A stretch of DNA of 64,000 bases from Paramoeba atlantica (taxonomy: Eukaryota; Protista; Discosea). Positions within the stretch are counted from its first letter, which is position 1; each line of letters opens with the position of its first letter. This document shows positions 1 to 63,560 of the stretch, one piece after another. The DNA lies in contig CDRNVI010000049.1 of NCBI GenBank assembly GCA_977017575.1, positions 186,001 to 250,000 on the forward strand, in the 5' to 3' direction. The notes beneath the pieces were generated by a model, which saw only the letters and a program-made list of their open reading frames with translations, did not search any database and was not told the DNA's origin. The position numbers and the translations under genes are program-made.

Positions 1-1106
1 CTATGTGGTCTTGTTTTGGAAGCATCTTGGTTGCATTTTAATCCAGAAATTATTCACGAAATGGCTGAGAAGGGGAAACAGCTATGGACATATGGTAAAG
101 GTAACAATGCTGCCTCGTGGGTAATGCAGCAATATGATTTAGGAGTACATCGTGTCATTACCGACCTTACTGGACAATTAATTGGTGAGATTAGAGCAGT
201 GGGATTCTTAACATTTTAAATCAAGTCTTTGTCCAGAGATCTCATTTCTATTACTAGAATCATCCGACATTGGTGTTGTGATTCACCACAGAAGCCTAAT
301 GGAGCCTTCCTAATGAGGAACCTAATGTTCACAACTTGTGAACATTAACACAACTGTTCAATTTTTCTGATGATACAAGGTATAAAACGTATAATTTTGC
401 AATGGACTAACAACGCCGAGGAAATTATACGGAATTCTAATACAGAACGTGGCACTCTTCGAGCGAACTGATATCATATTGTCCGATAAGGTGATATGCA
501 TTCATCATTCACTATAAGCCAGATTTTTATATTCCAGCCGACGAGTAAGAAGAATACAGTATCACAAAAAAGTTAACCATCTTTTGAGCATTTTTTCAAA
601 GTTACGCACGGACTGATATTTCATAAATATTTATCTCACATTTTTTTGCAGGCGGTTGAAACGTCAGAACCTCGCACTGAACTTTTCGGAGGACCATCCT
701 TCAGTGTAGTCGAACACAACCGCGTTGACTTTTTTCTGTATACCCTTGGCAATATTCGCGAAACGGCATTAAATGATGCAGATTCGCGAATTGCAGCTGA
801 ATCTTTAGGAAGTTGCTTTTCCTCCGTTGAAGTCAGAAGATCACTTCGACCACTTCGACTGCCCACTACATGGAGAGTGGAAAACCATTTGTACTTTGCA
901 GGAGGAGCGTCTCGACGCCATGCAAATTATTACTCAAATTTCAGTAGAACAGGACCTCAATTCGCAAAAGGCCGCTACTTTTCCTCCTCAGTAAGGTCTG
1001 TTGGATGCAGTAATTTTGGAATCTTGAAAAACATAATGTATCTCAGAGAACAATTTCACCAATGTCCTCAATCTAGAAAGGTACAACAAGAATAATAATA
1101 ATAAAC

Positions 1107-1933
1107 GGTTAAACTGAAGCAAATTTAGCATTTTTCATATTTTTTGATATTTCCGATGAATCCTGGCTCTACTTCGAAGCTACTCTCTTCCAATACAATG
1201 AATTTAAATTGATTTCTTTCTTACTTCAATATCTTAAGACTTTCTTACATAACTCTGCGAACTTAAAGACGAATACAAGTGCAATGAGTCTGCAAGTTCT
1301 CGAGGATTCTCAGCATGACATCCCCGCCGTTCCTCTTCAAACTTCCGTTACATTTTTCAGGAATTGCTTGAACTCGGTCTGATCTTTTCCCTGGCTTGCC
1401 CCCCAAATATTTCCTTCACGTTTCAAACGCTTCTTAGCCATAGAGTTAGCACATTCAACAGTGTTTGTATGTACCCCGTCTGGGGTGACCCATTGCTGAC
1501 GATGATTTACACTTCGCCACTCGTACTTGGACCGAAGTTTTAGATTATGACGGGCGCCAAGAAGCGGACGGGCGCAATGAAGAAGCAAGTTCATCAATTT
1601 TTGAAACGAGCGTTGGTACACCACCACTTTGCTCCAATGAGCTTCATGTGTCGGGGTGACTTGTGTACTTTCCTGTAGCACACAACTTTCTGGGCTAACA
1701 GCTTGTGGCTTTTCATTCATTCGGCATATTCCTGCTCGCAAAGTGCAACTTTGCTTAATGTGAGGTCACCCCGACAAGAAAACCCAGCACACCCTTGACA
1801 AGGCATAACAAAATCACGAAAAATCCAAAAATCAACCTAGTAGAATAAAAAGAAGATTTTTTTGGGGGCAAAAAATAGGAAAAAAATTAATCAAGAGAAA
1901 AGCTAAATTTGCTTCAGTTTCACATAAAAAACC
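1107..1933 (-). mobile_element. Internally deleted Merlin (IS1016/ISXO2-like) DNA transposon remnant
   Basis: The minus strand encodes the Merlin C-terminal motif VNHRQQWVTPDGVHTNTVECANSMAKKRLK. Another frame gives an N-terminal Zn-ribbon piece, VCYRKVHKSPRHMKLIGAKWWC. A 24-bp inverted repeat AAACTGAAGCAAATTTAGC(A)TTTTC sits at 1111-1136 / 1897-1920. Confidence 0.7.
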
Positions 1934-2047
1934 CATACTTCTGCATTATTTTTGCTTGCTAATTAATATTTCGAAAAATTTTACGTTACGGTGCTTTTAC
2001 TAGGGCTGTACCCATTGTGCGTCTTAGTTTAAGATTGAGTGGTGTAC

Positions 2048-3109
2048 ATGTCTGACTATGAGTGGAAAACAGTTCAATCAAAAAGAAAAAAATCGCGTCG
2101 AAAACGGGTACCCCTTTTTCTTCAAGAGAAAGATTCCGGATTTGATCCAGGACTGATAGAACTGGAAGCATTACATTCGGGAACGGGAGTGGCACGAAAA
2201 ACGCTGATCGAACCTGAGTTGTGTGCGTTGAAGATGCAACGTGCGCACAGATTGCTACGCATCATTAAGCATATCGTAAACTGCACACCTCGATATCACC
2301 AAATGTCGAAGTCCCTTGACGAGGTTGCCCGTATTATATCGCATTCATGGAATTTGCTTTACCCTGATCAGGCTGTTTATGCACATATTCGTCATCTCGC
2401 GCTTGCTCTCGGTTCTATCGAAAAAAATAAGAATACTCTTCCACAATTATGTTTTTTCCTTTCGTTGCGAAATCAGCTTGCGATGCGTTTGCAGTCCTTC
2501 ATCACTGCATCTACCGATGTAGGGGATCGCTGCCCTCATCAGTGGCACACAGATGATTTAGCTCAGGCGTACGATCCGGATTCTACATCAATGGATCAGT
2601 TTGTACTTTCTCAATGCGGTTTGCATTCGCGTTTGAATCACCATTACTTTCGAGATGAAAGCAAGAACAAAGTCGAACCTTCAGTTTACGTAATATTTGC
2701 CCCTCACGCACCCTTGCAGCTCACTATAGAAATATGGAATCAATTGCGCATTTTCCGAAGTTCGATGAACAGCATTCCCCAGGAACCCTCAGCAAAAGAG
2801 AACAGATTGTATTCGATGCTCGTTTGGATAGGAAACCCTATGATATGCCCCACATTTGATTTTGAGGGAGCACCCCTATTAAAGGAGCACTTCATAGATA
2901 TTCCTTTAAAGATATTAAATCCTTTCGAGGAATCTCCGCTGGCGCTGGAGGACACTTGCATGTCTATTCTTCGAATTTCTCACCAGATATCCCCACCCAA
3001 CGAGGTATCTACACCGCCCCTTGCTTTTGATGAAACCAGGGTACAAAGCAACATGGCAGCACTATACAAATATTGCAAATGGAACGGTGCAGGTGAATTT
3101 CGTGTGTAG
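2048..3109 (+). CDS. SRR1/Ber1-like domain protein
   Basis: Open 350-aa ORF. Motifs follow SRR1 domain order: EWKTVQSKRKK, LALGS...QL.FF, AYDP...D..VL..CG, FAPHAP, WIGNP. Recognised from motif memory only. Confidence 0.6.
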   Translation: MSDYEWKTVQSKRKKSRRKRVPLFLQEKDSGFDPGLIELEALHSGTGVARKTLIEPELCALKMQRAHRLLRIIKHIVNCTPRYHQMSKSLDEVARIISHSWNLLYPDQAVYAHIRHLALALGSIEKNKNTLPQLCFFLSLRNQLAMRLQSFITASTDVGDRCPHQWHTDDLAQAYDPDSTSMDQFVLSQCGLHSRLNHHYFRDESKNKVEPSVYVIFAPHAPLQLTIEIWNQLRIFRSSMNSIPQEPSAKENRLYSMLVWIGNPMICPTFDFEGAPLLKEHFIDIPLKILNPFEESPLALEDTCMSILRISHQISPPNEVSTPPLAFDETRVQSNMAALYKYCKWNGAGEFRV

Positions 3110-3142
3110 ACAATTTCTTGCGTGGATCGCTTAATGGTACTA

Positions 3143-3631
3143 ATGTATCCCCCCCGGTTTATAATAGCCGCGCTTTTGCCCAATTGAACCTATAAAGGAG
3201 GGGAGGGCGATGGAAGATTAAAAGTTGGCACTGAAATAGCCCTACATTTGGGAGCGAGAAACCAGGAATTATCCAATCGCTAAGTAGGCCCCGGCTCTCT
3301 GGCAAAGCAAAGTGTCCAGCACCACCCCGTGCCATACCTCGAAGAACCACGTAAAAATAATACTAGTATCAAAATATTTAAGACGGTGCAAGAAAATTAA
3401 AAAAAAACTTCCTCGGTTTGCCAAAAAAAGAACCTATAAGCGGAAAGTGGAAAAGCGAAAAGTAGGCGTGGAAAGCTAAAAAGTGTACGAAAGCTCGAAA
3501 AGTAGATAAAATAATAATAATTAAATATTTAAATATACAAAACTAACATGTTATCACGCAATAGAATGAAAGAAACAAAAAAAAATATAAAGGGGGGAAG
3601 GGTCAAGGCTATTATAAACAGGGGGGTACAG
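3143..3631. mobile_element. MITE with (C/A)TGTA(C/T)CCCCC termini and TA TSD (Tc1/mariner-type)
   Basis: Left end atgtatcccccccggtttataatagcc; right end ggctattataaacaggggggtacag; TA on both flanks (3141-3142, 3632-3633). Confidence 0.7.
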
Positions 3632-3845
3632 TAATTGCCTCTGCACGGTGCAGACTCCACCCTCGATCATTGGCAACGATGAAAAACAGATTTACAGTGC
3701 TCGTAAATACCGCACGCTGCTCTCATGTGACTTCCGGGTGAAATTAAAGCAAAATTCACCTTTTTAAAAAGGAGAATAAAAGCCCTCCCCAAAAATAGGA
3801 TTTCGTGTCATTTTCGTATAATATCATGTGCTTCCATTTTAGGCT

Positions 3846-3932: not shown

Positions 3933-4406
3933 GGACTAAAAACGAAAAATCGCCAAATCGTCATGAATAAACTATTTTTTTTGGGTGCAAAAGCCCGATT
4001 TTTAGGCGAAATTTGCGAAATTTTAACACGAATTTGGGCGGTTTATGATGCCTTGCCAATAGGGGTAGGAGGCGAATCTGACGAAACAAATGTCGTAGAA
4101 TGGTAGCTGGGGTCCCAAACTACTAAAAAAAGTTTTAGGAGTCGATTTTGGAAAAATAATGCTTTTACTTTTTTTTTTGGTCGCCCCAAAATTTTCGAAA
4201 ATTTTGACCTTGTCGGACTCCTCCTGCGCGTACCAGGGGGGGGGGGGTGGGGGAAATCATCGCCGCGGCATACTCTACCACTTCCCTGCGCTCAATTTCG
4301 AAAAGCAAAAAATTCGAAAAAGAAATCGCGACGTATGCCACCCGCCTGGACCCCCCTCCCCAATTTTAGACCATCGGAGCCCCCTTTTATACTTTTTTTT
4401 CTATTA

Positions 4407-5578
4407 TAAACCCCCCACAGCGAAAAGTCACCCCCCTCTAGCTTTTCAGCCAAGTGTCCGTTTGGGCTCATTTTTGTTGCATTTTGCTGTTCCCAACACA
4501 AAGACTTTGCCCGTTAAAGCATGGAACCAAAACTCCCAAATGCGTGCATCCGATAGATGGATTATCACTTTCTTCACATTCTTCAAGAGACCAATTTCTC
4601 ACACTTTAACTAATTAAATATTCTCCTCCCATGAGGAAATCAATTAAATTTCATTTTATTTCTGTCCGTTTTTGCTGATTTTTGTTGCAAACGAGAAATC
4701 TATTATTACTGTGTTCCTCTTTATATTTTCACTGTTTTTGTTCACTTTTTTTTCAATAATTGAGGGTAGAGCGGTAGTTATACAACCACCGCAATTTTTT
4801 CCTTTATTTTTCAGATGTTTTTGTTCAGGTCCAAATTTTTCTCAACTCCAACACACGTCCTGTAAAATATGTAAAGTCGTAGAGTTTCTTATCCCGCAAC
4901 GGCACCATTCTCAAAATGTAACGGAAGTATAAGATGTACGATACAATGGCAAATAAACCCCCGCTCGGTAGTACGTTGGGCACCAAGATGCCAAGTTTGG
5001 GGTGCTGTAGGAGTGGGGTGGAGGTATTTGGTTATTCTACGAAATGACACATCTATTACAAGCGAGACGTACATAGAAACATTAAAACAGGTAGATTTCC
5101 CCCCTAATAGTGTATTTCAACAGGAAGGGGTAACGGCACATACCGCCCGTGCCTCCAAAGAGTATATTGAGAATCGAATGAGTGATGTTTTAAGAAACTG
5201 GTCCCCCAACTCGCCCGACCTTTCCCCAATAGAAAACGTCTGGTCTATAGTCCAAGAGGCGGTAGACGAACAAACGCCATCGGACAAACCTTCACTTACC
5301 CGATGTGTACATAAAGCATAGTCTTCTTTAACTCAAAAAGTGATCGACAAAACAGTATTAAGTTTTGATTCTCGACTTAAGGAGTGTATAAGATTGAAGG
5401 GCGAAAAAGTGACAAAATGGTAATTCTTCTCTAAATTGTGCGTATTCGTTTTTTTTTGTCCCATTTCTTTACGCGCAAAGTCCTTGCGTTGAGTTCTGCA
5501 AAATGCAACAAAAATCAGCTCAAGCGGACATTTGTACGAAAAAAAAGAGGGGGGTCACTTTTCGTGAGCGGGGGTTTA
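4407..5578 (+). mobile_element. Tc1/mariner DNA transposon, defective
   Basis: TIRs TAAACCCCC(C)ACAGCGAAAAGTCACCCCCCTCT / AGAGGGGGGTCACTTTTCGTGAGCGGGGGTTTA, TA flanks. Transposase remnant FQQEGVTAHTA...WSPNSPDLSPIENVW (decayed DD34E signature). Confidence 0.85.
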
Positions 5579-6082
5579 TATACTGACGGTTCTAGAGAGA
5601 GTATGATAAAATCCCAAGAAATTCGCAGTGGTGCAGGGATTGTAATCATACCTCCGAAAAAAGAACCAATTGGATGCGGAATACCGCTAGCAGTTACGAC
5701 AATTGAGAGAGCAGAACTTCAATCTTTCTATTTGGCTCTGGGTAAATTACCTGAAAAATCTTGCGTTTGTTTATTTCTCACTGATTCGAATTATGTCTGG
5801 TAGTTTTTTTCACAATTTGCGCCATAAACGGCATACCCTGGACGGCAATAGGAGGTAATTACCTCCTATTACCTCCTATTACCACATATTTTAGTCTACA
5901 TTGTGACTTCTAAAAAGTCTTACGTTATCCTATCTAATTGTGTTCTAAGTGATAAAGGGGGCTTTTTTCGTTACTAATACAGAGTTTCTGCTTTCTTGTG
6001 GTGCAAAATACGGTGTTATTGTGCCTCTAGGACCTACGTAATGGCGTTCTTACCTTTTATCTAACTTCTTACTATTCCCCAT

Positions 6083-6444
6083 CAAAGTTTGAAGCACATG
6101 GTTCTCAGACGGCGAGTTCAAACCCGCTCATCGCAATATTCCTGGCGGCCTCACTCTAAGAGGCTGGGCTGAGAACCGACTAGGCCCAGTACTCGGAGGA
6201 CCGTCCCGGACCCTCCCCTCAGGGAACCAGCTCCCTTACCCGGCTTACACCTCTTTGGTAAGCCGTGTTGACGTACAGTTCGTTGACGCAGCGTGTTGCA
6301 ACAGCACTTTGGTGCCGCCTTGGAAAAGCGGAAACTGGTAGAGGACGTCGGCCTCGGAACTTCCAAATCTGTCTGTGAAGGGTCTGGCTTTCCAGTGACC
6401 ATCCGGAGCAATCCGGATTGATTTGGATATTTTTTTTGATTTGG
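6083..6444 (+). mobile_element. tRNA-derived SINE family 1 (head truncated) with 12-bp TSD
   Basis: TSD ACTATTCCCCAT at 6071-6082 and 6445-6456. B-box-like GAGTTCAAACCC. Body is shared with 9218-9592 and 18535-18937. T-rich GATTTGG tail. Confidence 0.85.
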
Positions 6445-6792
6445 ACTATTCCCCATACTTTTTCCCACGCTCTTATACTTTTAATGAAAGTCATAACTGT
6501 TAGTTACTTTAAACTGTTCATTAATCGAGTTAATATCCTGATATATCCTGATATGAAGAGGAAGATATTACTCCAAGGTCTCGAAAGCGAGCAGCGCGTC
6601 GTATTAGCAACGAAAGATTGCTGTCGTATTAGCAACGCGATGCTGTTAATCAGCGGGCGGCTGATGGACCAAGCCAATTAAGCTTGACCACAGTGAGAAA
6701 GGTCACGGATATTTCAAGCCATGCGAAGAAAGTTCGTTCTCGGAACGTTGAGGACCCACTTAAATTTGGAGATCTATCCTGTTATTTTTATT

Positions 6793-8210: not shown

Positions 8211-9217
8211 GTTTAGTTTTATTGATCTTTTAATATCAAAGATACCGTTTCTGTAAACATATGGTTTTTTCCTGAGCGTAAATTTCAGTCCAAGTTCTGT
8301 CATGTTAATTGGGTGATAGAAAAGTGGCAATTACCACATATCACCACGCATGTGGTAATTACCGCCTATTACCGTCCAGGGTATGAAACGGCGTAAAGTG
8401 GAATACAATGGAATAAAAAATGGTGATTTGATGCATGATGTGGGTCTTCAGCTCCGATTCCTAAAATTTAATTCTTATACCATATACTTGTGCAAAGTAA
8501 GGGCGCACATTTGAAATAAATGGAATGAAGAGGCAGATTGCCTAGCACTTTTGGCAGCGCGTAAAGTGGCTCGGCCTCCGATACCAAAAAGGAGAAAAAA
8601 AACTGACAACTCGGAAAATCAAGAGAATTCACAGCCTTTATGGTCCTTAAATGCCTTACTCAAAAGGAAATCCCTTGGAAATGCTTCGAGGTAAGGTTGC
8701 GAGAACTGGCTGGAATAGGAAACCGCCCAAGTAAGGAAAGAATTAATGGAATTGCATCTTTGTAAACTTGGAATACCTTGAGGATTGTGTATAGGTTATG
8801 GGGAAAATATTGTTTGTTTGTACCGTACCAGAAACATATAAACTCTGAACTTGGAAGTGATAGATGAAAGCTTCAAGGTGGAAGTGTTAAGTTTTTCAAC
8901 CAACTCTAAGTCGGTCTTATTGGATATGGATTCTTATTGGATACAAGGGCGGCGATGTAATGCTGCACATCCTAGATAATCTACAAGATCATTGTCGTTG
9001 TATTCATTTTAAGTTGAGAGCTAGAAGCGCAAAGTTTTAATTTCTTTACACAAATATTTTTATGAACAGAAACAAAATGCCTTTTTGAAAAGGCGAATTT
9101 TGCTTTAATTTAACCGACTTCCGTAACTCTGCGAATCAGCCCCAAACTCGGCACCGGTTGGGTGACCGAAGGAGGGGCGAAGTACTTTGACGTGGTATTA
9201 CTGTGACCTCCAAAAAA

Positions 9218-9592
9218 TACAAATCCAAATCATTCCGGATTGCTCCGGATGGCCACTGGAAAGCCAGACCCTTCACAGACAGATCTGGAAGTTCAGAGGC
9301 CGACGTCCTCTACCAGTTCCCGCTTGCCCAAGGCGGCACCAACCTGCTGTTACCAACACGATGAGCCCACGAATTGTACGTCAACACGGCTCACCCAAGA
9401 GGTGTGAGCCAGATAAGGGAGCTGGTTCCCTGATGGAAGGGTCTGGGACGGTCCTCCAAGTACTGGTCCTATTCGGTTCTCAGCCAAGCCTCTTAGAGTG
9501 AGGCCGCCGGCGTATCACGATGAGCGTTTGAACTCGCCGTCTGAGCACCATGTGCTTCAAACTTTGAATTCTTGCCACTCCGCCACCTCCGC
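9218..9592 (-). mobile_element. tRNA-derived SINE family 1, full head
   Basis: The minus strand head has A-box TGGCGGAGTGG and B-box GAGTTCAAAC. Body is closely similar to 6083-6444. Confidence 0.8.
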
Positions 9593-9849
9593 CCTAAGTG
9601 GTGGAAAGTGGTGGCGGTGGGGCGTCGTTGGGGTGTGGGAAGATGTGTGTGTGCGTGCGCGTATGTGAGGGTGTGTGATGATTCGGGGGCTCGTCGGTGA
9701 TGGGGCGCTTTGTATGTTTGTGCGGTGTTATCTGAGCAGCAGATCTTCTGACAAGTACCGTTTTTTATTTTCAATGTGCAACATATGCCCGAATTCAAGC
9801 TCGGAATGGGTTTCGGAAAAATGATTTTATTCAGCGCTAAACGACTAAT

Positions 9850-10666: not shown

Positions 10667-11117
10667 AAGAAGAAGAAGAAGAAGAAGAAGAAGAAGAAGA
10701 AGAAGACACGGAGGGCTCTGCAGCGCCAACCGTTAGGGTAGAGTCTCAGGCCATCGACCTTCATTGTCTTGTTACCCCCTTCCAAGACGGCACTCGACGC
10801 CTTGCGGCCAGAGCACGGCTACCCAACCATATCTACCAGGACGGGCTTCCACCCCGTTGCATCGTGTAGGCTGTGTCTCAAGCCTCCTTTGCGTAGGCAG
10901 CTCGCAGTTTAGCGGCTGCGCTGGGGCCTGATTCAGCTCGGCGGTCCCGGGTCGGTCTCCAGGGGAGCGGGGTTGGGTGTGGGCCTTGAAGGCACTCCTG
11001 ATCGCTTTCCCTTTGAAGTGAGGCCGCCAGGTTGCGAGTTTTGTCGATAGCGGTGGTCGAACCCACAACCTGCAGGTTGTAAGGCCCACCGTCTAACAAC
11101 TACGCACGCACCGCTCT
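10631..11117 (-). mobile_element. tRNA-derived SINE family 2 with (TTC)n tail and 12-bp flanking duplication
   Basis: tRNA-like head ...GCGTAGTTGTTAGACGGTGGGCCTTACAACCTGCAGGTTGTGGGTTCGACCAC. Shares CCTGGCGGCCTCACT with SINE1. CCTATCCTATCC at 10619-10630 and 11118-11129. Confidence 0.7.
10638..10706. repeat. (GAA)n microsatellite, the tail of SINE2
   Basis: Pure aagaag run of about 23 units. Confidence 0.95.
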
Positions 11118-11800
11118 CCTATCCTATCCTATAAGACCGATTTGCATCGGTTAAGAACACATCCGTTTTATTCGTCGCTTCGACGTCTTCTCTCAGGTGA
11201 ATTCGCCCTTTCATGCTCCTGGTCCGCTGAACCGGGCGTGGTACGTCTTTCATGCAACTTTGTATTTTTGGCATCACATTCCTCAGGCAAACACTCTTTC
11301 TTTTCAGGAGAATCCACTCCAGTCTCTACAGGTGGCGAGGTACCCTTTTTGGAGAGAGGATCACCTTCTGCAATCTTGAAGTAATCCCGTATTTTCCCTA
11401 ATGGCTTAGGTATTTGCCACAGTGTTTCCGAGGACGATTCATGTTTTGAACGGTTTCTGAGCTAACCCTTTGAGCTTCTGAGGCACTTGTCGCAGTCTTT
11501 CTCCTCTTTATTTCTGAGGCTGGGACTATTTTTCTCGACCCTGCAAGCGCCAAGGTGTCTGCCTTCTCATTGTAAATGTTCCCGTTGTGGAATTTCACTT
11601 TGCACACGTAACACCTTTTATCCATCGATTGGAGCGTTCGAATTTCCCGATCCAATTTCTCAAGGATACCCCCATTCGGTAGATTGTTATACCCAATGAT
11701 TCGCCGTCGTAGACGAGTATGATGGAAGAAATTCCATACATAGAACGAATCGGTGTGTATAACAACTGTTTGAGCCTCATTAGGTATCCTTTCCAGCGCT
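11118..11800 (-). mobile_element. 3' end of an RNase H-bearing LINE with (ATAGG)n tail
   Basis: CYVCKVKFHNGNIYNEKADTLALAG (RNase H C-terminus). The 3' end aagaccgatt..catcggttaag with cctat repeats is shared with 17815-17860. Confidence 0.7.
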
Positions 11801-12142
11801 TCCGAAGAAAAGAATGTCTAGTGGAAATGACGAAAATGAAGATGAGGAAAAAAAATCAAGGGGGTACGTCCCGGGTTCGTTGAGTACTCAACGAAGTGTC
11901 ACCACTTGGTTGAATAATCAACGAAGTGTTATACACTTTGTTGAGTACTCAACGAGTATTTTTGTGCGTGATCGTGAGTATTCTTTTTGATGATGATGAT
12001 GTATTCTTTTTACTTTTGTTAGGCCCAGGAAGTGCACATTTATATCAAATTTCAAAAGAAAATAATAGAAAACAAGAATAGCAAATATGTTCAAATTTAT
12101 CGTGTTTTCTTATCAACTATTCGCAAAAAAAATTAACGGTTC

Positions 12143-14254
12143 ATGGCGCGCGACAGCCCCAATCGAATTGAGGACGCGGAAGATTTGGTTCGCCGTTTTC
12201 TTTCTTATATTGATCGTCAGAATCGCAACAGTGAGCGCTTGAGTGGCAACAGTGAGCGCTTTAATCAGGGCGATGGTGATGGGCCTTGGGAAGATCAACG
12301 AGTTGAAATTCCATCTACGCAAGTTGCTCGTCGCACTTGTAGTGGATGTGTTGGGTTTGCGTGCGTTCGTTCGTGAAAAAACTTGCGCCACATTCCTCAA
12401 GGCGAGTCCGCCATCGAATGGATGTTAAACCATCATCTGCTTCGACACCCTCGTTGCGAAAAACATGGCCCTGACTACATGAGGGAAGTACGCGGAAGAC
12501 CGCACGTAGAAATATGTACGTATCGTGCTGACGATGCTCGCAACCCATGTCGTGCGCGAGCGTTTAGATTCTCCCCTTTTTTGAACAGTCGCCCTGGGGT
12601 GGATATAGACAAAGTAGTCAGCCCGAAAGTACCAATCAACGATGAAAGTTTCACTGCAGAAGAGCTCGAGGACGGCATCAGTAGACTAGCGCGCAACAAG
12701 GCACCTGGAATAGACCAAATTCCGGCGGAGGCACTCAGAATGATCACAGAACATGCTGAGCTGAGAAAATCCTTATTACATATTATAAACGAGGTTCATC
12801 GAACAGGGGTTTCGCCTGCGTCCTGGAAAATTGTCCTTCAGGTGCCTATTCCAAAAAAAGGCGACCTGACACAAATAGCGAATTGGCGGCCAATCTGTCT
12901 CGTGAACAGTGCGGTTAAATTGATGAATGCAATGATCCTGAAAAGAATCAGACCATCCATCGAGCCGCTCCTTCGCGACAGTCAATTTGGTTTTCGGCCA
13001 GAAAGTTCCACGGCAGGGGCGCAAATCATTTTGAATGATGCAAGAGTTCGTGCGACCAGGGGAAAGAAAGGCATTGCAGCGGCATTCATGGACTTCGCAA
13101 AAGCATTTCCCTCGGTATCGTTTCATGCCATCCGTGCTGCATTGAATGCCTTTCATGTCGGACCCGCGCTTACTAGGATGGTAATGTCCTTGTACTCGAA
13201 TTTAAAAGGAATAGTCCGCACACCATACGGAAATACGGATTCTTTTCCCATTGAAACAGGAATTCTTCAAGGGGACGTGCTTGCTCCTTACCTCTTTGTG
13301 CTTGTAATTGATAGGATTCTCAACAAAGCACTCGATAACAAGCCGCTCGGGATTCTTCTAAGGAGCAGCAGGACGAAAAGCAGGGGAATTCAAGAATTTA
13401 GACTAAAGGACATCGACTACGCAGACGACATAGCACTTTTAGCTTCCACGAAACATGAAATATCGCAAATGATCGAAGCTACGGCAAATGAGGCAAAACC
13501 AGCTAATCTGAGGATTGCCGTGGGGAAAACCAAGACTGCGTGGATGGCCTTTGGGAAAGTTCCGGGGGGGACGCGAGAACTTCGAGCAGGATCGCTTGGC
13601 AAAATTCCTCTTGTGGATTCCTACCGGCATCTTGGTCATCTTCAAGATGCTACAGCATCATCCCCCATCAAGGGCAGGCTAAGGCTCACATGGGCAGCAT
13701 TTCGTAAACTCAGTGGCATTTTGGCTTCTCCTCTGAGTGCTGCCACGAAAATACGCCTGTTTGACTGCTTGATCTACCCTATTTTAACGTTTGGTGCATC
13801 CTGTCTTTCTCTTTCTAACAAAATGCTTCGAAAAACGGAGGTTGAGGTAAATATGATGAGGAGATTCGCTTGTAACTCAGCAAAGCTTGACGATTTCGGA
13901 CACTGCTACAAGGGGTTTGTCACTTTGAGGGGCCACCATACCAATCACGCGGAAGCTGCGCATCGAACCATTAAACAATGGACGAAACAGCAACGCTGCA
14001 ACTATGGGGCGAAATCGATGGACCTTCGGCGAAACGTGGCTCTCCAATGCGTCAAATATGGCTACGGCAAAACAGAGCGCCGAAAAGCGTGGCAGACTCG
14101 GTTCATTAACATTCTCGAATGCATCTGCACTCATTACGGGTACGAGGCAAATGACGAGCAGTTGGATGTAAGCGATAGCCGCTGCTCATTCTACTTGAGC
14201 GAAGACGCATCAATTTCCAGCGAAGACATGCTAGGGAGTGATGAATCGGAATAA
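12143..14254 (+). CDS. Chimeric ORF: Merlin N-terminal Zn ribbon + complete RTE-like reverse transcriptase + Merlin C-terminus (one TGA at 12374-12376)
   Basis: N part: EWMLNHHLLRHPRCEKH...C...C. RT: NKAPGIDQIP, NWRPICL, QFGFRP, DFAKAFPSV, GILQGDVLAP, YADD, YRHLG. C part: GFVTLRGHHTNHAEAAHRTIKQW. ORFs 12143-12376 and 12383-14254 share one frame. Confidence 0.8.
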
Positions 14255-14651
14255 ATAAGCAGTCTTTTTCGTAGAGAAATACACACTACATACTATATCC
14301 CAGCGGCGTCCACAGCAACGGTTCTTGTACATAAAATCGTATCCAAGATTTTCTGTGGTTTTTCTTGGTGTCGCGCGGATTGATTCTTTTCGAATTATCC
14401 ATACCATAGTCAGCATTCAACAATTTATCCATAATATGGAGCAGATTTTGTGACATCCAATTCGTCCACAGCACCGGTTATTTGTACATAAAATCGCATC
14501 CAGGATTTTCTGTGGTTTTTCTTGGTGACACGCGTATTCTCTTTTTTCCGATATTCTAGAGCATAATAATCAGCTAAATGTTTGTGCATAACGTTTCTGG
14601 AGGAAACATCTCTCATTTAATTAGTTTCTTCGATGCAACGATTAATTGTAA

Positions 14652-14945
14652 ATCCTGCGGAAGGGGTAAACACAGGTTCTCACTGCGCGACCCGCGAGCT
14701 GGAGCGCAGGGGTCGCCAAAAAATATAATTATATCCCAGGGCTAAGCTCACAGTTTGGTCTTGCTCGCAAACGGGGGCCTTGCTGTGGACTTCGGCTTCG
14801 CTCACAGTTGGGCCTTGCCTCTGGATAATCCTGCGGAAGGGGTAAACACAGGTTCTCAGTGCGCGACCCGCGCGCTGGAGCGCGCGGGTCGCCGAAAAAT
14901 ATTATTATGTCCCAGGGCTAAGCTCACAGTTGGGCCTTGCTTGTG
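14652..14945. repeat. ~110-bp direct repeat with GC hairpin inside the Merlin element; a further ~75-bp repeat pair at 14310-14535
   Basis: atcctgcggaaggggtaaacacaggttctca... occurs twice; 13-bp stem gcgacccgcgcgc/gcgcgcgggtcgc. Confidence 0.85.
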
Positions 14946-16329
14946 GACTTGGGCTTCGCTCACAGTTGGACCTTGCCCCTGGAAGACAACCCTGGAAGTG
15001 GCAGACATAGGTTCTCAGTGCTTGACCCAGCGAAAACACACTCGTTGAGTACTCAAGCAAGTGTACAACAAGTCGTTGAGTACTCAACGAAGTGTCACCA
15101 CTTGGTTGAATAATCAACGAAGTGTTATACAGTTCGTTCAGTGCTCGTTGAGTTCAGTACAGTTCGTTCAGTTCGTTGAGTACTCAACGAACCCGGGACA
15201 TAGCCAATCAAGTTTTGTCTTTTGGGAAAAAAGTCCCTTTTCTATTTTATACACTTCTTAAGCCGAGAGTCAGAGCTTAATACCATACCTTGTCGGTTCA
15301 TGAAACAATGAAAAACCTTTGTACAGTGGTCGTCGGCATAACGTGCCCTTTCTCTAGAATGCGCCATTTTTTTTTGCTTATTTTTTTAGCAGTGAAGAGA
15401 TATTGGCGAGCATGTGCCAAAGATGGAGTCATTTCTCTAAAATGAACAATTTTTCCGAAATTTTTGCGAACGATAAAATATTCTTTTTTTGGAATCGTTT
15501 TTCGGTTTCTTCTATAGTTGATGTACTTACATAACACCGTGAGGTATTTTGTGTTCCTTGCTACACATTTTTACATGATACACTTTCCTATGGTACATAA
15601 ATCAAATCATTATTAGCCTTCTTGTAACACAAAGGAACAGGGCATTCCAATCCGGGTGCGCAAAGCAAATAACTTTCTTATGAGCCCCAGTGCGGGGATA
15701 GGGGTGTTGTTCTGCGCAAAACGTCCAATGCCGTTAGTATCTGTAGATATGTGCGGGTTTCAGTGAGTCGCTGTGGGCTGCTTTGATTCGTTGCGACTAG
15801 ATGTGAGTATCACGATGGACGAGTCAGAATCCAGAATAACCAAGTGTCTCCACCCCAAACTCCTATGGCACCCAAGGCTTGACATCTTGGAGCCCAGCGT
15901 ACTTTTTTCTTCAGGCAGGTTGTTGGACGGGATGAATCTTCCTCAATGAACTTCGGCTGAGCAGCTCAGCCAGATTCTCCTGAAAGGGAGTATGCCCCTC
16001 CTCTTACTCACTAAGTTGATGATGATGATGCTTTGAGTCTTTTGACTCCGAAAAGTTATGGCCCCTCAACTCCCCAAACGGGTAGTCCGAATACGTCTGG
16101 GCAGCAAGCTATGGCTGACCTCCGCTTGGAGAGGAATGAGGTTTCCAAATATTATTCTCCAATAAAGGAAGCCAATAATTAACAGCTCGGATAGGTGGGG
16201 CTCGCTACTCCCCAACATGGTTTAACATGTTAAGCCACGACCCTGCCTAACTTTAAATTGTTGTGTGGATACTACCCTAGTTTCTTGACGTCTTGTTTTA
16301 CTGACGCCGGGTAGTTCCCCAACATGGGA

Positions 16330-16700
16330 GATGGTGGCGACGAAGGGGTCGGCGAAAGGGGGCGCGGCCGAGAGCGCGATCGGAGAGAGAGCGCGGCGGG
16401 GAGCACGACGGGAAGCTCGGCGGGATCTGCGGCGGGGAGCGCGCGGAGAAGCGCGGCTGGGAGAGCGACGGGGAGCGGCGGAGAGGACGAGAAGGCGGGC
16501 GAGTAGGCGGCCAGCTGCTGGTGCGCAGGGGGCGAGCAGGGAGCAAGCAGGGTAGCGAGCAGTGCGGCCAGCAGGCGGCGAGCTGTGTGGCGAGCAGGGG
16601 GCGAGAAGGGCGGTGCACGGGGGGCCAGGAGGGCGGCGCACGATCGGGGGAGGGCGGCGCACAAGAGGGCAGGGAAGGGGGCGGGCGGGTGAGTTAGCTC
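16330..16700. repeat. GC-rich low-complexity degenerate repeats
   Basis: Runs of gcggcgggagc / gcgagcaggg units. The overlapping Arg/Pro/Ala ORFs carry no domain signal. Confidence 0.7.
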
Positions 16701-18534: not shown

Positions 18535-18937
18535 AAACAAAAATCATTCCGGATTGCTCCGGATGTTCACTGGCAAGCCAGACCCTTCACAGACAGATTT
18601 GGAAGTTCCGAGGCCGACGTCCTCTACCAGTTCCCGCTTTCCCAAGGCGGCACCAACCTGCTGTTACCAACACGATGAGCCCACGAATTGTACGTCGACA
18701 CGGCTCACCCAAGAGGTGTGAGCCGGGTAAGGGAGCTGGTTCCATGAGGGGGGTCCAAAAATCCAAAACAAAAATCCATAATGGGGGGGGTCCGGGACGG
18801 TCCTCCAAGTACTGGGCCTAGTCGGTTCTCAGCCCAGCCTCTTAGAGTGGCCGCCGGGAATAATGCGATGAGCGGGTTTGAACTCGCCGTCTGAGCACCA
18901 TGTTCTTCCAACTTTGAATTCTTGCCACTCCGCCAAC
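18535..18937 (-). mobile_element. tRNA-derived SINE family 1
   Basis: A-box TGGCGGAGTGG, B-box GAGTTCAAACCC, body matches the other two copies. Confidence 0.8.
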
Positions 18938-39859: not shown

Positions 39860-40715
39860 TGCATTTCGTATCGCGGTTGCATTTCTTGACTTTGCGAAAG
39901 TTTTTCCGTCTGTTTCTTTTAATGCGATTCGGGCTGCTCTCAACGCTTTCCAAGTGGGAAATTCTTTGACGCGAACAATAATGTGGATCTACGAAGGTTT
40001 GAGTGGTATTGTTCGTACTCCTTACGGAAATACAGATCCATTTCCTATAAACAGTGGAATTCTATAAGGGGATGTTCTGGCTCCTTATCTTTTTGTGCTT
40101 GTGGTTGATCGAATTCTTTATCAAGACTTAGAGGGGTGACTCTGGGTGGGAGCGCCTGGGAGTGCCTAGGATATCTTTCGTCGAAAATTTCTTCCTTAGT
40201 TTCTTAATATTTTTTTCTTCTATCGGAAGATACAGAAATCATGTTACTGGAATTCTATTCCAGTAGGATTTTTTCCAACTTTGTTCGTGCAAAATCCGAA
40301 CTTGGCGGGCCCATCCTGCGGATACCAGGGGGGGGTCACCCCCACGTGGGGTTGTAAAATTTGTTCAATTTTTTTTAACAATCAAGGGTACAGCGGTAGT
40401 TAAACAACCACAGCAATACGCCTAACGTTAAGACCGTCCAAGCGGTGGGCTTTTCTTGGTCGAATGAGCAGAGCGTCCCATCCAAGGGCCATTGAGGATT
40501 CTGGACCTCTTTGCGAAAATCATTTCACCAAGTCGGATCTCCGTAGAAGTTTACTGGGAGCGCCTGGGAGCGCCCGGGCAGGAGTCACCCCTCTTAGATA
40601 ACAAATCACTGGGCATCGTTCTACGGAGCAGCGGTACTTAGAACAGGGGAATTCAGGAAGTTAGGATACGGGATATCAACTACGCCGATGACATTGCTCT
40701 ACTCGCTTCTACCAC
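39860..40715 (+). mobile_element. Decayed RTE-like RT fragment (paralogue of the RT in 12143-14254), interrupted by a MITE
   Basis: FLDFAKVFPSVSFNAIRAAL...GIL*GDVLAPYLFVLVVDRIL | LDNKSLGIVLRS...INYADDIALLAST. Confidence 0.85.
40131..40593. mobile_element. PIF/Harbinger-type (Tourist-like) MITE, TTA TSD
   Basis: TIR GAGGGGTGACTC / GAGTCACCCCTC; TTA at 40128-40130 and 40594-40596; removal rejoins the RT fragment. Confidence 0.8.
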
Positions 40716-59273: not shown

Positions 59274-60521
59274 TCATGTGGATGGATGAGCCTTCAGAAC
59301 CCCGTCTTGCAAAGCAAAAGGAGAATCTTGAAAAATCGTTTCTGATTTATGCTCTGACTTTGGTGTTTTGATTTGCGTCACTTTTTTCGAAGCTTGATTT
59401 TGCTGTTCACGGTTATAGTCCATTATACGGCGGAGCAACTTGGACAGCATTTCGGTCCAGTTAAAATCCTTTGTTGTGTAGTCCACAAATTTACCCTCAG
59501 GATCCATTAGGTAGTGAATAATGCTGTGATCAACAAGGTAATCAGTGGGACTTGTGCTTTCATCCGAAATAGAAAAATAGACACGATAGGCTCTTGCTAC
59601 TCTTTCAATGTCTTCTAAATTCCCAGTCAACGCCAATATACGTGGATGGAAGTCGCTGATATATTCTTTTAGTACATCAGGTGTGTCTCGTTCAGGATCT
59701 ACCGTAATAAATACAGGCTGCCATATTTCTTTTCCGATCTTTTTATCGAGTTGAGTAATCATGCGGGTCAGTTTCTGCATCTCGTTCGGACATATGTCTG
59801 GACAGTTCGAGAAGCCAAAATAGATGTACAGCCATTTCCCCCTGAGATCTGTGTCCTTAACTATTTTTCCGTTCGTATCAATCAATTCAAACGGACCCCC
59901 TATAGAAGGACCTCCTGGTTGATCAAAGGTTCGTATTTGTCGAATTCGTGGATCAAATCTACGGCGTTCGTTACGTAAACGAAAGCACACTATAACATAT
60001 CCCACTGTGGCAGCAAGAAAAAGGAGTGCATAGAGCATCCAAATAGGATTATCGGTAAACTCGTCCAATGCAGTGAAGATTTTTTGTACTGATGTCTTCA
60101 TTGCACTGTCCTCTCGGTCAAGGTATTCTTGCAAAGTATACACCGTGTAGGGCCTATCCTGTACAGAACCTTTTTGTGCATCATATAGCTCCAATTCATC
60201 GTCCCCGGCATCTGTGCGCCGTGCCCATCGTACGGAAGTTCTCCACAGGGAAAAAGACGCGAAATGGGGCCTGTATCGGCCTGGCACCTCACCAGAGGAT
60301 TGCGTCAAGATCTGTGGGGTGTGAGATCTAAAAGAGAAATTAGCAGGGGTAGATGAATATACACGATCTTTCAACTTGCCGTAACTCAAACCAAAAAGTA
60401 AATTTCGTTTGCTTACGGAAGTTGAGCATCCTTTCTTGAAAGCTTTGTCTACAAAACAGATCCCATCAGACTGACCACACTGCCCATTAGGAAGGCCAGA
60501 TCTTCTAGCAAGAAGATTCAT
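59274..60521 (-). CDS. SCO1: Cytochrome c oxidase assembly protein SCO1/SenC
   Basis: TM helix, IGGPFELID, FGFSNCPDIC (CxxxC), DYLVDHS. Likely start MNLLARRS at 60521. Confidence 0.92.
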   Translation of the reverse strand: MNLLARRSGLPNGQCGQSDGICFVDKAFKKGCSTSVSKRNLLFGLSYGKLKDRVYSSTPANFSFRSHTPQILTQSSGEVPGRYRPHFASFSLWRTSVRWARRTDAGDDELELYDAQKGSVQDRPYTVYTLQEYLDREDSAMKTSVQKIFTALDEFTDNPIWMLYALLFLAATVGYVIVCFRLRNERRRFDPRIRQIRTFDQPGGPSIGGPFELIDTNGKIVKDTDLRGKWLYIYFGFSNCPDICPNEMQKLTRMITQLDKKIGKEIWQPVFITVDPERDTPDVLKEYISDFHPRILALTGNLEDIERVARAYRVYFSISDESTSPTDYLVDHSIIHYLMDPEGKFVDYTTKDFNWTEMLSKLLRRIMDYNREQQNQASKKVTQIKTPKSEHKSETIFQDSPFALQDGVLKAHPST

Positions 60522-60789
60522 CTTATGGGAACACCAAATATTATGGCAACGCTGTATTAAGACATTACTGTAAACAACCGCAACAGGAAAGTGATAAAAG
60601 GCTAAGAAAAAAAGAAATAGCATAATTTTAACAAAAAAAATCCAATATTTCAAAAAATTAGGAGTTTTTTATCAAATATAGTTTCTTATTTTTTGAATAT
60701 ATCCAATCCTCACATGATGTGCGGGAACCAAGTGTCGCGCAACGTACTTCAAAAACAGAACAATACATTTTGTTCACTACATAAAGAGC

Positions 60790-61740
60790 ACTTTTTTTTC
60801 CTTCAGCCCCCGAGCCCATTAGCGCACGCCCCTACGGTACCAATTTTGTACCGCGGCATGCGCTATCTGGGCGTTCCCCTTTTGGATGGCTACCCCGATT
60901 GCCATGATAAAGTGGCTGAGGCAACCATTCTTCTCGCCTGTGGCCTTCCGAGCGACCAGATTTAGAAACTGGGGGGTCTCGGGGACGGGGACACCGTACG
61001 TGGTGAAGGCCAGCGGGAAGAAATCCATCTTCCTGGCCCCCGCCATTTCTTCGTGAGTACGCCTTTTGAGGCGTTCGGCCTGTCTCACGGTGAAGGAGGG
61101 GTCTGCTGCCTCCTTGTCCACATAAGACTGTGCCAGTGGGTTCACCACCGTCACGTCTACGAGGACGAGCTTCCGCCCCAAAAGGAAACAGATGTCCGGT
61201 CCCCGCCCGTTGTCGAACCTAGGTTCGACTAGGTCCGGGGAGAATCCGTACTGGGTCAGTAGGTTCCTGAAGGTTTCCTTAACCCCCTTATGGCGAGAGG
61301 CCTGTGTCTTGCCACGAAACTTTTTGCAATCCGTGGCATGGACGCAGAAATCCTCGTTTTTGAGGGCTGCGCCACACACACATTGGATCTCAGGTTCGGA
61401 GGTGGGGGCCACCATGTACCGGAGCCTAGCGGCGGTCTCCTATTCGGGATCCCGCATGTAGTACTCCGGCCTGTTCGGCCACGCGTTCATCCACTTGGTG
61501 GAGTGGGTGTTCTGGATCTGTCGCATGCAGACCAGATGCGTGGCCGACGGTGCCTTGTCCATAGCCGCCGCCCCATAAGCGCGTCGCTGCTCCCTGGCTG
61601 GGGTGCCAGGGGATCGGCCTTGTAAGGCCTTGACGGCTTTGGCCTGCATGTCCTCCGCCTTGTCTTCGAAGGGGATGGTGCCCAGGAAGTCCGCCGTAAA
61701 AAGTTTGTTTGCGAACGGCGTCGTTCCTATTGCACCCATC
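60790..61740 (-). mobile_element. 5'-truncated CRE/SLACS-like retroposon (REL endonuclease), paralogue of 6793-8210
   Basis: CVCGA...HATDC, GPDICF...LVDVTVVNP, FFPLAFTTYG; short A tail at ~60790; one TAG stop. Confidence 0.85.
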
Positions 61741-62989
61741 CCCCCTATAGTTTATAGTGTTTCAAGAAAATGTGTAGTACTATTAACCTCGTTTATAGTA
61801 CTATAAACACTATGTAGTACTATAAAAACTATATGGTGTTTATCAGTGTTTCATGTCCAGAAAGGCGCGCGGTAGACAGATCGGTCGATGGACCTGGAGG
61901 AATTTCGCGGGGCAGGAGAGAGCCGATGGAGGTGTAGAGGCTTAGAGGGGTCACGTGATGTCAGGTGGAGCAAGTGGTGTGGATACGCTGACGCGTAGAA
62001 AAACGTGAAAAGAGTTGTAGTTTTTGTGCAGAAATGGAAAAAGACGGGATCCTATAGCTCACAACACGCATTACAGTTGTCCTTCAACGAGTTCCCGTTA
62101 GATCACTCGTTGAATCCTAGACGTGGCGTATTCAATGGCAAGATAAAACACAAAAACACATCGCAGAGCCTGCAAGATTCAATATCTGCAAAATTCATAA
62201 TCTTTTGAAGAAATTTGAAGAATCACTTACCCGCTATTTCACATTTACACATTATATTTCGGCAGGAAAGGCGACCTAAAAAGACAAGGCGTTTGGGCTG
62301 GAACACATCTGAAATTAAAGTAGGCGGACTTCCCCATCGACCTCAACGAAGTGTGAAACCACGACGCTTGTTGAGCATAATGATGAGAAAAATAGTGAGA
62401 AATCTTTCAAGAAAACGGGAGGGATAAAAATAAATTGCGTCGAGTCGGCATTTCAAGCAAAACGTTCAGAAAAAATTTACTAAGAAAAATAGTAAAAAAT
62501 ATAGTTTTTATATATAGTGTTTCAAAGTTTATAGTACTATAATAGTACTATAAAATAGTTTTTGTAGTTTTACGGACCTCTGGATGAAACCATTCAGGTT
62601 CGGGGTCGGTTCGCCTGGGTTCGCCTGGCGCAATCTATTCCCCTTCTACTAATTCTTATTTATTACTTTTTTATTAATTCGTCCTTTTTATTCGTTTTTC
62701 TGTTTTTTAATGTATGTATTGAATACATACCTTATTCTAATATATCTATCATATTAAATGTTGCAAGACAGCGACAACTGCAACATCATTAAGGAACTGT
62801 ACGGAGTTCCTATTGATGGGACTATTCTTCTTGAAGCATTAGTGCTCATGTCACAGGCTCGTGATACAGGGCTATTGTTTCATGAAAATGCGTCCAAAAC
62901 GTCGCTTTGTCGGGTGAAGGAGAAGAATCTTACAAACACTTGCATGCATCCGTACCATCACCGGTACCTCCGACCCCTTTTTATAACAA

Positions 62990-63560
62990 GAATATAACAT
63001 AAAAAGATCAACAACATCTCCCTAAAGCTCCTGGCTCAAAGCTTGAATGCGAAGCAACAATACGCAATCCGCGTACACACACCTTCAGAGACAGGTGAAG
63101 CTGTAAAATTGTTTGTTAAAAAGGTGGAGGAGGTTATTCAGACGTGGCTGGGTCTGCTTACGGCAGAGAAAATCGAGCCGGCTCGCCTTCCTATTAAGAA
63201 AGGGGGATTGCGATTGACTTCGCGTACTAACATTAGAGAGGCGGCATATACTTGTAATACTTCGCTTCATATGACAAAAGAGCGCCAAAATTCCTTTTCT
63301 GCTCGTGCCAATGGAGTGAGGGGAAACGGAATTCTCAACGCCGGTAACTCCCACGATCTAGTACCACCAACACACGACAAGAACAATCGCAGCGATATAC
63401 CACGACGAAGTACTAAAGATCATAGAGAAGGACCCATTCATCTCCAAGATCCTAAGGGCAACGACGATAAATGGGCCAGAGCGAGATATTCCTGCATCCA
63501 AGCGCGAAGCTGAGGTACGAAGTGTGCTTCGAGGAAAGGTTGCGAGAACTGGCGGTAATT
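62990..63560 (+). mobile_element. Highly decayed CRE-like RT C-terminal fragment
   Basis: YAIRVH.P...ARLPIKKGGLRL...EAAY. GCTTCGAGG.AAGGTTGCGAGAACTGGC is shared with ~8685-8712. Confidence 0.55.

Follow-up and report, generated by a model that had tools for sequence, protein, structure and literature searches.

The systems closest to the locus reported here are the Merlin DNA transposons and the non-classical insertions of the retrotransposon LINE-1 (long interspersed element-1, L1). Merlin elements have terminal inverted repeats that begin with 5'-GG and a target-site duplication of 8 or 9 bp, and those described are without the zinc ribbon of IS1595; in kinetoplastids, only a few degenerate copies without ends are found (PMC8101967). 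Non-classical L1 insertions are 3' truncated, carry neither a tail nor a target-site duplication, and mostly come with loss of some target DNA and with microhomology (PMC1920257). The stretch of Paramoeba atlantica DNA considered here (64,000 nucleotides of contig CDRNVI010000049.1, assembly GCA_977017575.1; hereafter the window, whose coordinates are used for all element positions) contains a 3344-bp Merlin element at 11862-15205, bordered by inverted repeats and a target duplication, in which the middle of the transposase gene has given way to a piece of a LINE that encodes reverse transcriptase (RT). A sequence-only reading of the window had offered two explanations for this arrangement, namely a chance capture during gap repair or a hybrid of class I and class II elements. 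The analysis presented here makes it very probable that the element is a dead chimera of break repair without function, whichever repair route produced it.

Two copies of one Merlin insertion

The assembly that was searched comprises 45.7 Mb in 248 contigs, among which C49 denotes the contig with the window copy and C29 the contig with a second copy. On C29, the Merlin copy (C29:761504-764272; L031:2005-4773) is framed by the same AATCAAG duplication, shares 54 bp of flanking sequence on the left and 1571 bp on the right, and has 430-435 bp where the window copy has 1302 bp; it holds an open reading frame (ORF) of 327 codons in which the Pfam domain DDE_Tnp_IS1595 is recognized (7.5e-12). Because flanks and target duplication are the same on C49 and C29, both Merlin copies go back to one insertion, and because the C29 copy keeps the 435-bp DDE core, the swap happened in place and on one copy of the region only. 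Other copies of this Merlin family lie in different flanking DNA, and the members on C54, C84, C21, C30, and C41 likewise keep core sequence. As read from the alignment of the two contigs, the Merlin insertion is shown to be older than the divergence of the C49 and C29 copies, with 435 bp lost from the middle of the transposase gene and 1302 bp gained from the middle of a LINE later, in the C49 copy only.

Since the divergence, C49 has gained the LINE patch and a TGA codon, and C29 has gained a 1-bp deletion near the C-terminus and a 391-bp insertion resembling a short interspersed element (SINE), which sits in the N-terminal coding part (L031:2558-2948) with a 10-bp duplication. Further copies of this SINE-like repeat of ~390 bp occur at 6082-6445, 9209-9593, and 18541-18935. 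Positions 1226-24704 are collinear with C29:750000-775000 at 92-98.5% identity and positions 60000-63000 match C29:813711-816706 at ~100%; in all, the collinearity of the window and C29 extends over at least 62 kb at 92-100% identity, with differences that are mainly transposon insertions and deletions. To judge from this similarity, C29 has the whole region a second time, whether as the other haplotype or through a large duplication of recent date. Many genome searches return pairs of equal-scoring matches, so that much of the genome seems to be present in the assembly as two haplotypes (or as a recent large duplication).

The joints were mapped by a base-by-base three-way comparison of the element, the C29 Merlin copy, and a free copy of the LINE (L006), which places them between 12607 and 12608 and between 13909 and 13910 and sets the exchange at 435 bp of Merlin for 1302 bp of LINE. 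In a DNA search of the genome, element positions 747-2048 (12608-13909) match more than 22 loci at 97-99% identity, each over exactly that span, and the element arms match a handful of loci on C29, C54, and C84 at 91-97%. As the sequence-only reading had stated, no LINE tail and no duplication around the LINE piece is present at the joints in this comparison, and its view that the core was replaced, as opposed to receiving an ordinary LINE insertion, is borne out by the truncation of the LINE at both ends, the microhomology at the joints, and the loss of 435 bp of target. The same features uphold the chance capture during repair that it had put forward.

Both joints are also in frame, as had been claimed, with 435 bp (3 x 145) out and 1302 bp (3 x 434) in. 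For a random piece, the chance that the orientation and both frames fit is 1/2 x 1/3 x 1/3, or ~1/18, which is unremarkable in a scan of many windows; the in-frame joints are due to chance. When 80-base probes centred on each joint were compared with the assembly and every candidate was scored, each joint was found to occur once, and the other probe matches end at the joint. The further copies with both joints and different target duplications for which the sequence-only reading had proposed to search are therefore missing from the assembly, which holds a single copy. The coordinates of the element and of related features are collected in Table 1.

Table 1. Features of the Merlin element in the window, of its LINE piece, and of the source LINE
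Feature	Position	Strand	Basis or remark
Young LINE, separate copy, 5' truncated (nt 4278-4969, TAGGA-repeat tail included)	11114-11803	-	58 bp left of the Merlin end; absent from C29
Left target-site duplication AATCAAG	11854-11860	.	Identical to 15206-15212; same duplication and flanks at C29
Left terminal inverted repeat, 5'-GG start	11862-11895	+	Inverted-repeat pair I2; same terminus in C29, C54, C84 family copies
Left subterminal palindromic repeats, 3 copies, ~30-bp spacing	11875-11956	.	Repeat family D1
Merlin transposase N-terminal coding part, ~155 codons, conserved Cys/His pattern	12143-12607	+	Aligns with intact Merlin ORFs of the genome
In-frame TGA at invariant Trp codon	12374-12376	+	TGG in C29 and all intact relatives
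Left joint, 4-bp microhomology GACA, common to Merlin and LINE	12608-12611	+	Three-way comparison
Internal LINE fragment, 1302 bp, RT domain with YADD	12608-13909	+	LINE nt 2416-3717, codons 693-1126 of 1530-codon ORF
Right joint, 1-bp microhomology C	13909	+	Three-way comparison; free copies of the LINE extend 1253 bp further
Merlin transposase C-terminal coding part, 114 codons and TAA, third catalytic block HTNHAE then Lys	13910-14254	+	Alignment with relatives
Merlin 3' non-coding part: tandem modules 14325-14591 and 14651-14960, GC-rich hairpins	14255-15171	.	Repeat families D2, D3; inverted repeats I3, I16
Right terminal inverted repeat	15172-15205	-	Inverted-repeat pairing with left end
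Right target-site duplication AATCAAG	15206-15212	.	Matches left copy
Exo_endo_phos (apurinic/apyrimidinic (AP) endonuclease)	Codons 199-481 of source LINE ORF		Pfam 1e-8
RVT_1	Codons 773-1003 of source LINE ORF		Pfam 4e-30
RNase_H	Codons 1259-1401 of source LINE ORF		Pfam 6e-15

Coding content and substitution pattern

The borders first read from the sequence, with inverted repeats and a target duplication enclosing 11862-15205, were recovered in full. Both termini begin with 5'-GG as in other Merlin elements (left end GGGTACGTCCCGGG; right end, as reverse complement, GGCTATGTCCCGGG), 12 of the terminal 14 bp of the inverted repeats match and are followed by ~20 perfectly matched bases, and the target duplication measures 7 bp when exact or 8 bp when one mismatch is included. 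Palindromic subterminal repeats with the core TTGAGTACTCAA are spaced at ~30 bp, three of them at the left end and five at the right. The 3' non-coding part (14255-15171) is ~91% identical to that of C29. Within it, at 14651-14960, lies a ~176-bp tandem module with a GC-rich hairpin (GCGACCCGCGCGCTGGAGCGCGCGGGTCGC); the k-mer depth at 14744-15005 in public runs is 10-100x that of neighbouring sequence, which indicates that this module is very abundant in the genome.

Between the ends, a single frame runs from an ATG at 12143 to a TAA at 14252-14254. Its sole interruption is the TGA at 12374-12376, and nothing else separates the two ORFs of this frame, 12143-12376 and 12383-14254; the frame and the stop codon had been given the same coordinates in the sequence-only reading. 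Alignment of this frame, with X written at the TGA, to intact Merlin transposases of the same genome revealed that ~155 N-terminal residues with seven conserved Cys/His positions are retained, together with ~115 C-terminal residues that start KGFVTLRGHHTNHAE and contain the catalytic Glu block and a Lys seven residues on. The proposed comparison of the flanking peptides with Merlin transposases thus came out in favour of their Merlin origin, as did the reported C-terminal motif. The transposase centre is missing as described: a stretch of 145 residues (435 bp) is gone, and with it the two blocks that supply the catalytic Asp residues, which read QVDETF and VVTDEW in relatives, so that of the D, D, E triad only HTNHAE is left. 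As for the Merlin-type N-terminal zinc ribbon, the Merlin N-terminus stands by alignment but the zinc ribbon does not, since Zn_Tnp_IS1595 gives no Pfam match at E up to 1 in the window copy, in C29, or in three intact relatives, and what is seen is a Cys/His pattern. DDE_Tnp_IS1595 is undetected in the window copy because 145 codons of the domain are deleted, and it is present in C29 and in intact relatives. The Merlin flanks alone have no Pfam match, so their identity is shown through the sister copy on C29 and the intact relatives.

The first conserved Cys cluster precedes the TGA, and the remaining conserved Cys/His positions follow it. The possibility that this codon is reassigned to Trp was weighed and set aside: elsewhere in the genome TGA closes ORFs at their expected C-termini, for which reason it is taken as a true stop, and long ORFs have no internal stops. 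Judged by its reading frame and its missing core, the window copy is a defective derivative of a Merlin element, non-autonomous and dead. A protein search with the C29 ORF gave more than 130 Merlin matches genome-wide, many of them intact ORFs of 396-451 codons with the same domain. These matches fall into several families, with examples at C8:66771-67715, C51:122099-123043, and C40:81942-82877. A related family on C8 and C51 has intact 396-codon transposases at 72% identity, shares the first 9 bp of the termini, and has a similar palindrome. No intact transposase of the element's own family was found in the genome, all of its close copies being broken.

The inserted piece comes from a LINE whose full copies (L048 and L049) measure ~4970 bp, with one ORF of 1530 codons and a TAGGA repeat at the 3' end. 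Many copies are open over all of the sequence fetched, for more than 1300 codons and at 97-99% identity, by which measure the family is evidently young and probably active. Directly 5' of one full copy (L048, reverse strand, ~nt 1-3400; G000:C50) lies a long tandem repeat, two frames of which stay open over more than 1000 codons, with the peptide repeat FCKTIV. Domain scans, a check that had been proposed, found RVT_1 (4.6e-30) in the centre of the 623-codon ORF of the element and DDE_Tnp_IS1595 in the relatives only. The YADD motif is present as reported, but the description of the piece as a full, RTE-like RT requires correction. It spans codons 693-1126 of 1530, without the endonuclease, the RNase H, the TAGGA tail, and the 3' 1253 bp of the LINE, and so contributes only the RT to the set of endonuclease, RT, RNase H, and tail that an autonomous LINE possesses. 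RTE elements are without RNase H, and the source LINE is not RTE-like because its free copies carry RNase_H after the RT (6e-15). As a ~5-kb element whose one ORF encodes AP endonuclease, RT, and RNase H in that order, it resembles I/ingi-type elements in architecture.

The openness of the RT piece had been contrasted with the decay of a paralogous RT elsewhere in the window. That second RT, at 39870-40712, has only 70-74% nucleotide identity and belongs to a different, older LINE family, so its decay is uninformative on selection and the contrast reflects age. The 1.9-kb frame is open because the piece is young (~0.4% private divergence) and not because of selection. Variants in the piece were compared with those of 22 free LINE copies, and residue conservation was taken from relatives at 28-96% identity. 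At 11 of 1302 sites the piece departs from the family majority, which is typical, since free copies do so at 5-30 sites. Its five strictly private changes (R133S, G255R, W372L, D to G, and A to S) are all non-synonymous: R133S alters the Arg of a GFRPxRS motif, conserved in 44/44 relatives, and W372L and G255R alter a Trp present in 39/39 and a Gly present in 22/22 aligned relatives, respectively. With the addition of three changes that are each shared with one different copy, the count becomes 6 replacement and 2 silent changes, near the neutral ratio.

The Merlin coding parts behave alike. Compared with C29, they show 21 replacement and 2 silent differences where site counts alone predict ~18 to 5, which gives no sign of constraint; the N-terminal part, at 97-99% identity, has 8/9 protein-changing differences, and the C-terminal part has 13 replacement differences and 1 silent difference. 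The comparison of non-synonymous with synonymous change that the sequence-only reading had proposed for the RT thus returned a pattern that is neutral or worse, in the RT and Merlin parts alike. A word-based search with the 623-codon ORF among 5.8 billion proteins (subject length 343-1090 residues) found no Merlin-RT fusion, only RT relatives and none with the IS1595 domain (PF12762); coverage of the query by close relatives does not exceed 70%, the share taken up by the RT.

Routes to the chimera

The route that is favoured, with a probability that approaches an even chance and is to be held tentatively, is a patch of LINE complementary DNA (cDNA) at a break, that is, a non-classical LINE insertion independent of the endonuclease. 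In this route, a double-strand break would have opened within the Merlin copy, the free 3' end on its right side (13910) would have primed on LINE RNA via 1 bp of homology, reverse transcription would have run for 1.3 kb, and the cDNA would have been joined to the left side via the 4-bp GACA. It is preferred because the LINE was clearly active, because a second LINE piece lies 0.8 kb away on the C49 copy only, and because the element's own Merlin family is without an intact transposase. Three of the four features that define non-classical L1 insertions are seen, namely 3' truncation (1253 bp), no target duplication, and no tail, the fourth being a site off the endonuclease consensus; the usual target deletion and microhomology are present as well. 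Several points weigh on the other side. No feature of the sequence separates an RNA from a DNA template, and the selection counts of the RT piece are small, at 5 to 8 substitutions. For the joints themselves, support comes only from the internal logic of the assembly. The public runs in which the stretch occurs are four DNA runs, with no RNA run among them, and of their Logan contigs listed over 11600-15500 (3901 bases) none bridges 12608 or 13909, the contigs breaking off at both borders; from the LINE side they continue as LINE, and from the Merlin side as a Merlin copy that keeps the core.

This lack of bridging contigs is what an assembly artefact would predict, in which the LINE piece was misjoined into the Merlin copy via repeat-containing reads. 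Short-read contigs break at repeat borders, however, so that absent bridging is not evidence against the joints, and contigs of run X1 with exact matches cover the element-specific parts on both sides of the LINE piece. A misjoin would moreover call for sequence in common, of which the joints offer 4 bp and 1 bp only, and the two flanks of the piece together make up one Merlin copy, correctly ordered and oriented, whose ends and target duplication match. An artefact is thus very improbable. DNA-templated repair is a more serious possibility, although on balance a doubtful one. The Merlin copy would have been excised in trans or broken, the copying of the gap from the sister chromatid or homologue would have aborted midway, and a microhomology switch into a genomic LINE would have been followed by the copying of 1.3 kb and a switch back, in the manner of the abortive gap repair with filler DNA that gives rise to Ds-type and other internally deleted elements. 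The intact inverted repeats and ends, the internal position of the deletion, and the microhomology at both joints all fit such a course, for which more than 22 near-identical LINE copies are on hand as templates and the related family on C8 and C51 has intact transposases. Maize Ds elements are on record as containing filler DNA that stems from genes, from retrotransposons, and from other transposons (PMC3260210). On the other hand, the element's own family lacks an intact transposase, no genomic LINE copy has the variant set of the piece (the nearest, L002 and L003, differ at 12 sites), and the Merlin family was already old at the time of patching, given that the C49 and C29 copies differ by 2-8% and the patch shows 0.4% private change.

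A history in two steps appears distinctly improbable. Here a 5'-truncated LINE would have been target-primed into the Merlin core, and a deletion would then have removed the 3' 1.25 kb of the LINE, the tail, one target duplication, and adjoining Merlin sequence. The left joint, with a 5'-truncated LINE and 4-bp microhomology, does resemble a normal LINE 5' junction, and truncated and interrupted copies of the source LINE are common; yet two events are invoked where one suffices, the deletion must restore the frame by chance, and neither a target duplication nor a tail has left any trace. The cDNA patch, DNA-templated repair, and two steps all end in the same dead product. A working hybrid of class I and class II elements, in which Merlin N- and C-termini would tether an active RT to an inverted-repeat vehicle, is barely credible by comparison with the evidence, even though the in-frame joints, the RT motifs including YADD, and the intact element ends suggest it at first sight. 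The element is a single copy, with no propagated copies bearing the same joints; its ORF is interrupted at an invariant Trp, before the remaining conserved Cys/His positions; private replacements have struck three invariant RT residues; and the Merlin parts show a neutral substitution pattern, with no purifying selection seen since the fusion, if in small counts. The element is without endonuclease and RNase H and has lost two of its three catalytic transposase residues, no comparable fusion was found in the search of proteins of 343-1090 residues, and C29 shows the swap to be recent and private to one copy of the region. It is equally hard to believe that the fusion is, or for a short time before the TGA was, a working protein whose Merlin end-binding parts carry an RT, or, in a weaker form, that a related Merlin transposase moves the element in trans and so ferries the RT gene. 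The hybrid that the sequence-only reading had entertained would be remarkable if true, and the single copy, neutral substitutions, and stop codon make of it a repair scar.

Neighbouring repeats and relation to known systems

A SINE-like repeat of 425 bp, with its end at 11113, has its head directly against the LINE piece at 11114-11803. At the corresponding site (11113/11804), C29 carries 4.3 kb of other sequence, part of it from a different LINE family. The two LINE pieces of the window, at 11114-11803 (-) and 12608-13909 (+), are in opposite orientation, have successive LINE coordinates, and lie 804 bp apart. Twin priming, whose geometry this is, was considered as a simple explanation and rejected, as 804 bp of target DNA stand between the two pieces. 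Their variant sharing is ambiguous between one complex event and two independent hits, and it seems unlikely, if far from negligible, that both pieces stem from one complex LINE-mediated repair event with two target deletions.

The SINE-like repeat of ~425 bp at 10690-11113 has a tRNA-like head (GGTTCGA box) and occurs at 40 or more loci with 93-95% identity, forming clusters on C40 and C65. To the right of the Merlin element, the DNA (15288-16539) is a repeat in its own right, found at C59:376428-377716 and C26:505860-507148 at 87% identity, and many further copies match parts of it at 72-81%; a nest of repeats accordingly surrounds the Merlin element. A neighbouring element on the same contig (L035:1686-4481; C49:179186-181981), with inverted ends of 19 bp (TACTCCCCCTCTCAT) and an RT that has YLDD but is frameshifted, shows no sequence relation to the Merlin element or to the source LINE. 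Since some recombinase retrotransposons have inverted ends of their own, this element need not be a DNA transposon carrying an RT.

The modest value of the locus lies in its clean natural before-and-after pair, in which the same Merlin is seen with its DDE core (C29) and with a LINE patch (C49), so that the breakpoints are fixed to the base together with the size of the target deletion and the microhomologies used. It also calls for caution, since young retroelement fragments within other genes can mimic intact fusion proteins.

Compared with the Merlin superfamily (IS1595/IS1016-related DDE; Feschotte 2004 as summarised in PMC8101967), the window copy shares the 5'-GG ends, the ~8-bp duplication, a single ORF, relatives with DDE_Tnp_IS1595, and a Glu followed by a Lys seven residues on, but it lacks two catalytic Asp and has a stop codon. 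Unlike the kinetoplastid Merlin copies (PMC8101967), those of P. atlantica amount to more than 130 matches with many intact ORFs, and this family has ends and duplications. With non-classical LINE-1 insertions (PMC1920257) the patch has in common the double truncation, the lack of tail and duplication, the 435-bp target deletion, and the microhomology; it differs in that the donor is a protist single-ORF LINE with AP endonuclease, RT, RNase H, and TAGGA tail, and in that the RNA origin is inferred. Maize Ds and Ds-like filler elements (PMC3260210) and the microhomology-mediated miniaturisation of Tc1/mariner elements (PMC3814204) likewise combine kept ends and a lost transposase centre with foreign DNA joined in, whereas here, in comparison with Ds filler elements, there is no sign that the derivative transposed, and the filler is in frame and nearly intact, mimicking a fusion protein. 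The locus is a new case of a known event, which may equally be described as a defective DNA transposon filled with retroelement sequence or as a break patched by a LINE, and it adds an instance in which a LINE has supplied the filling of a chromosomal break in a protist whose LINEs and Merlin elements are very active.

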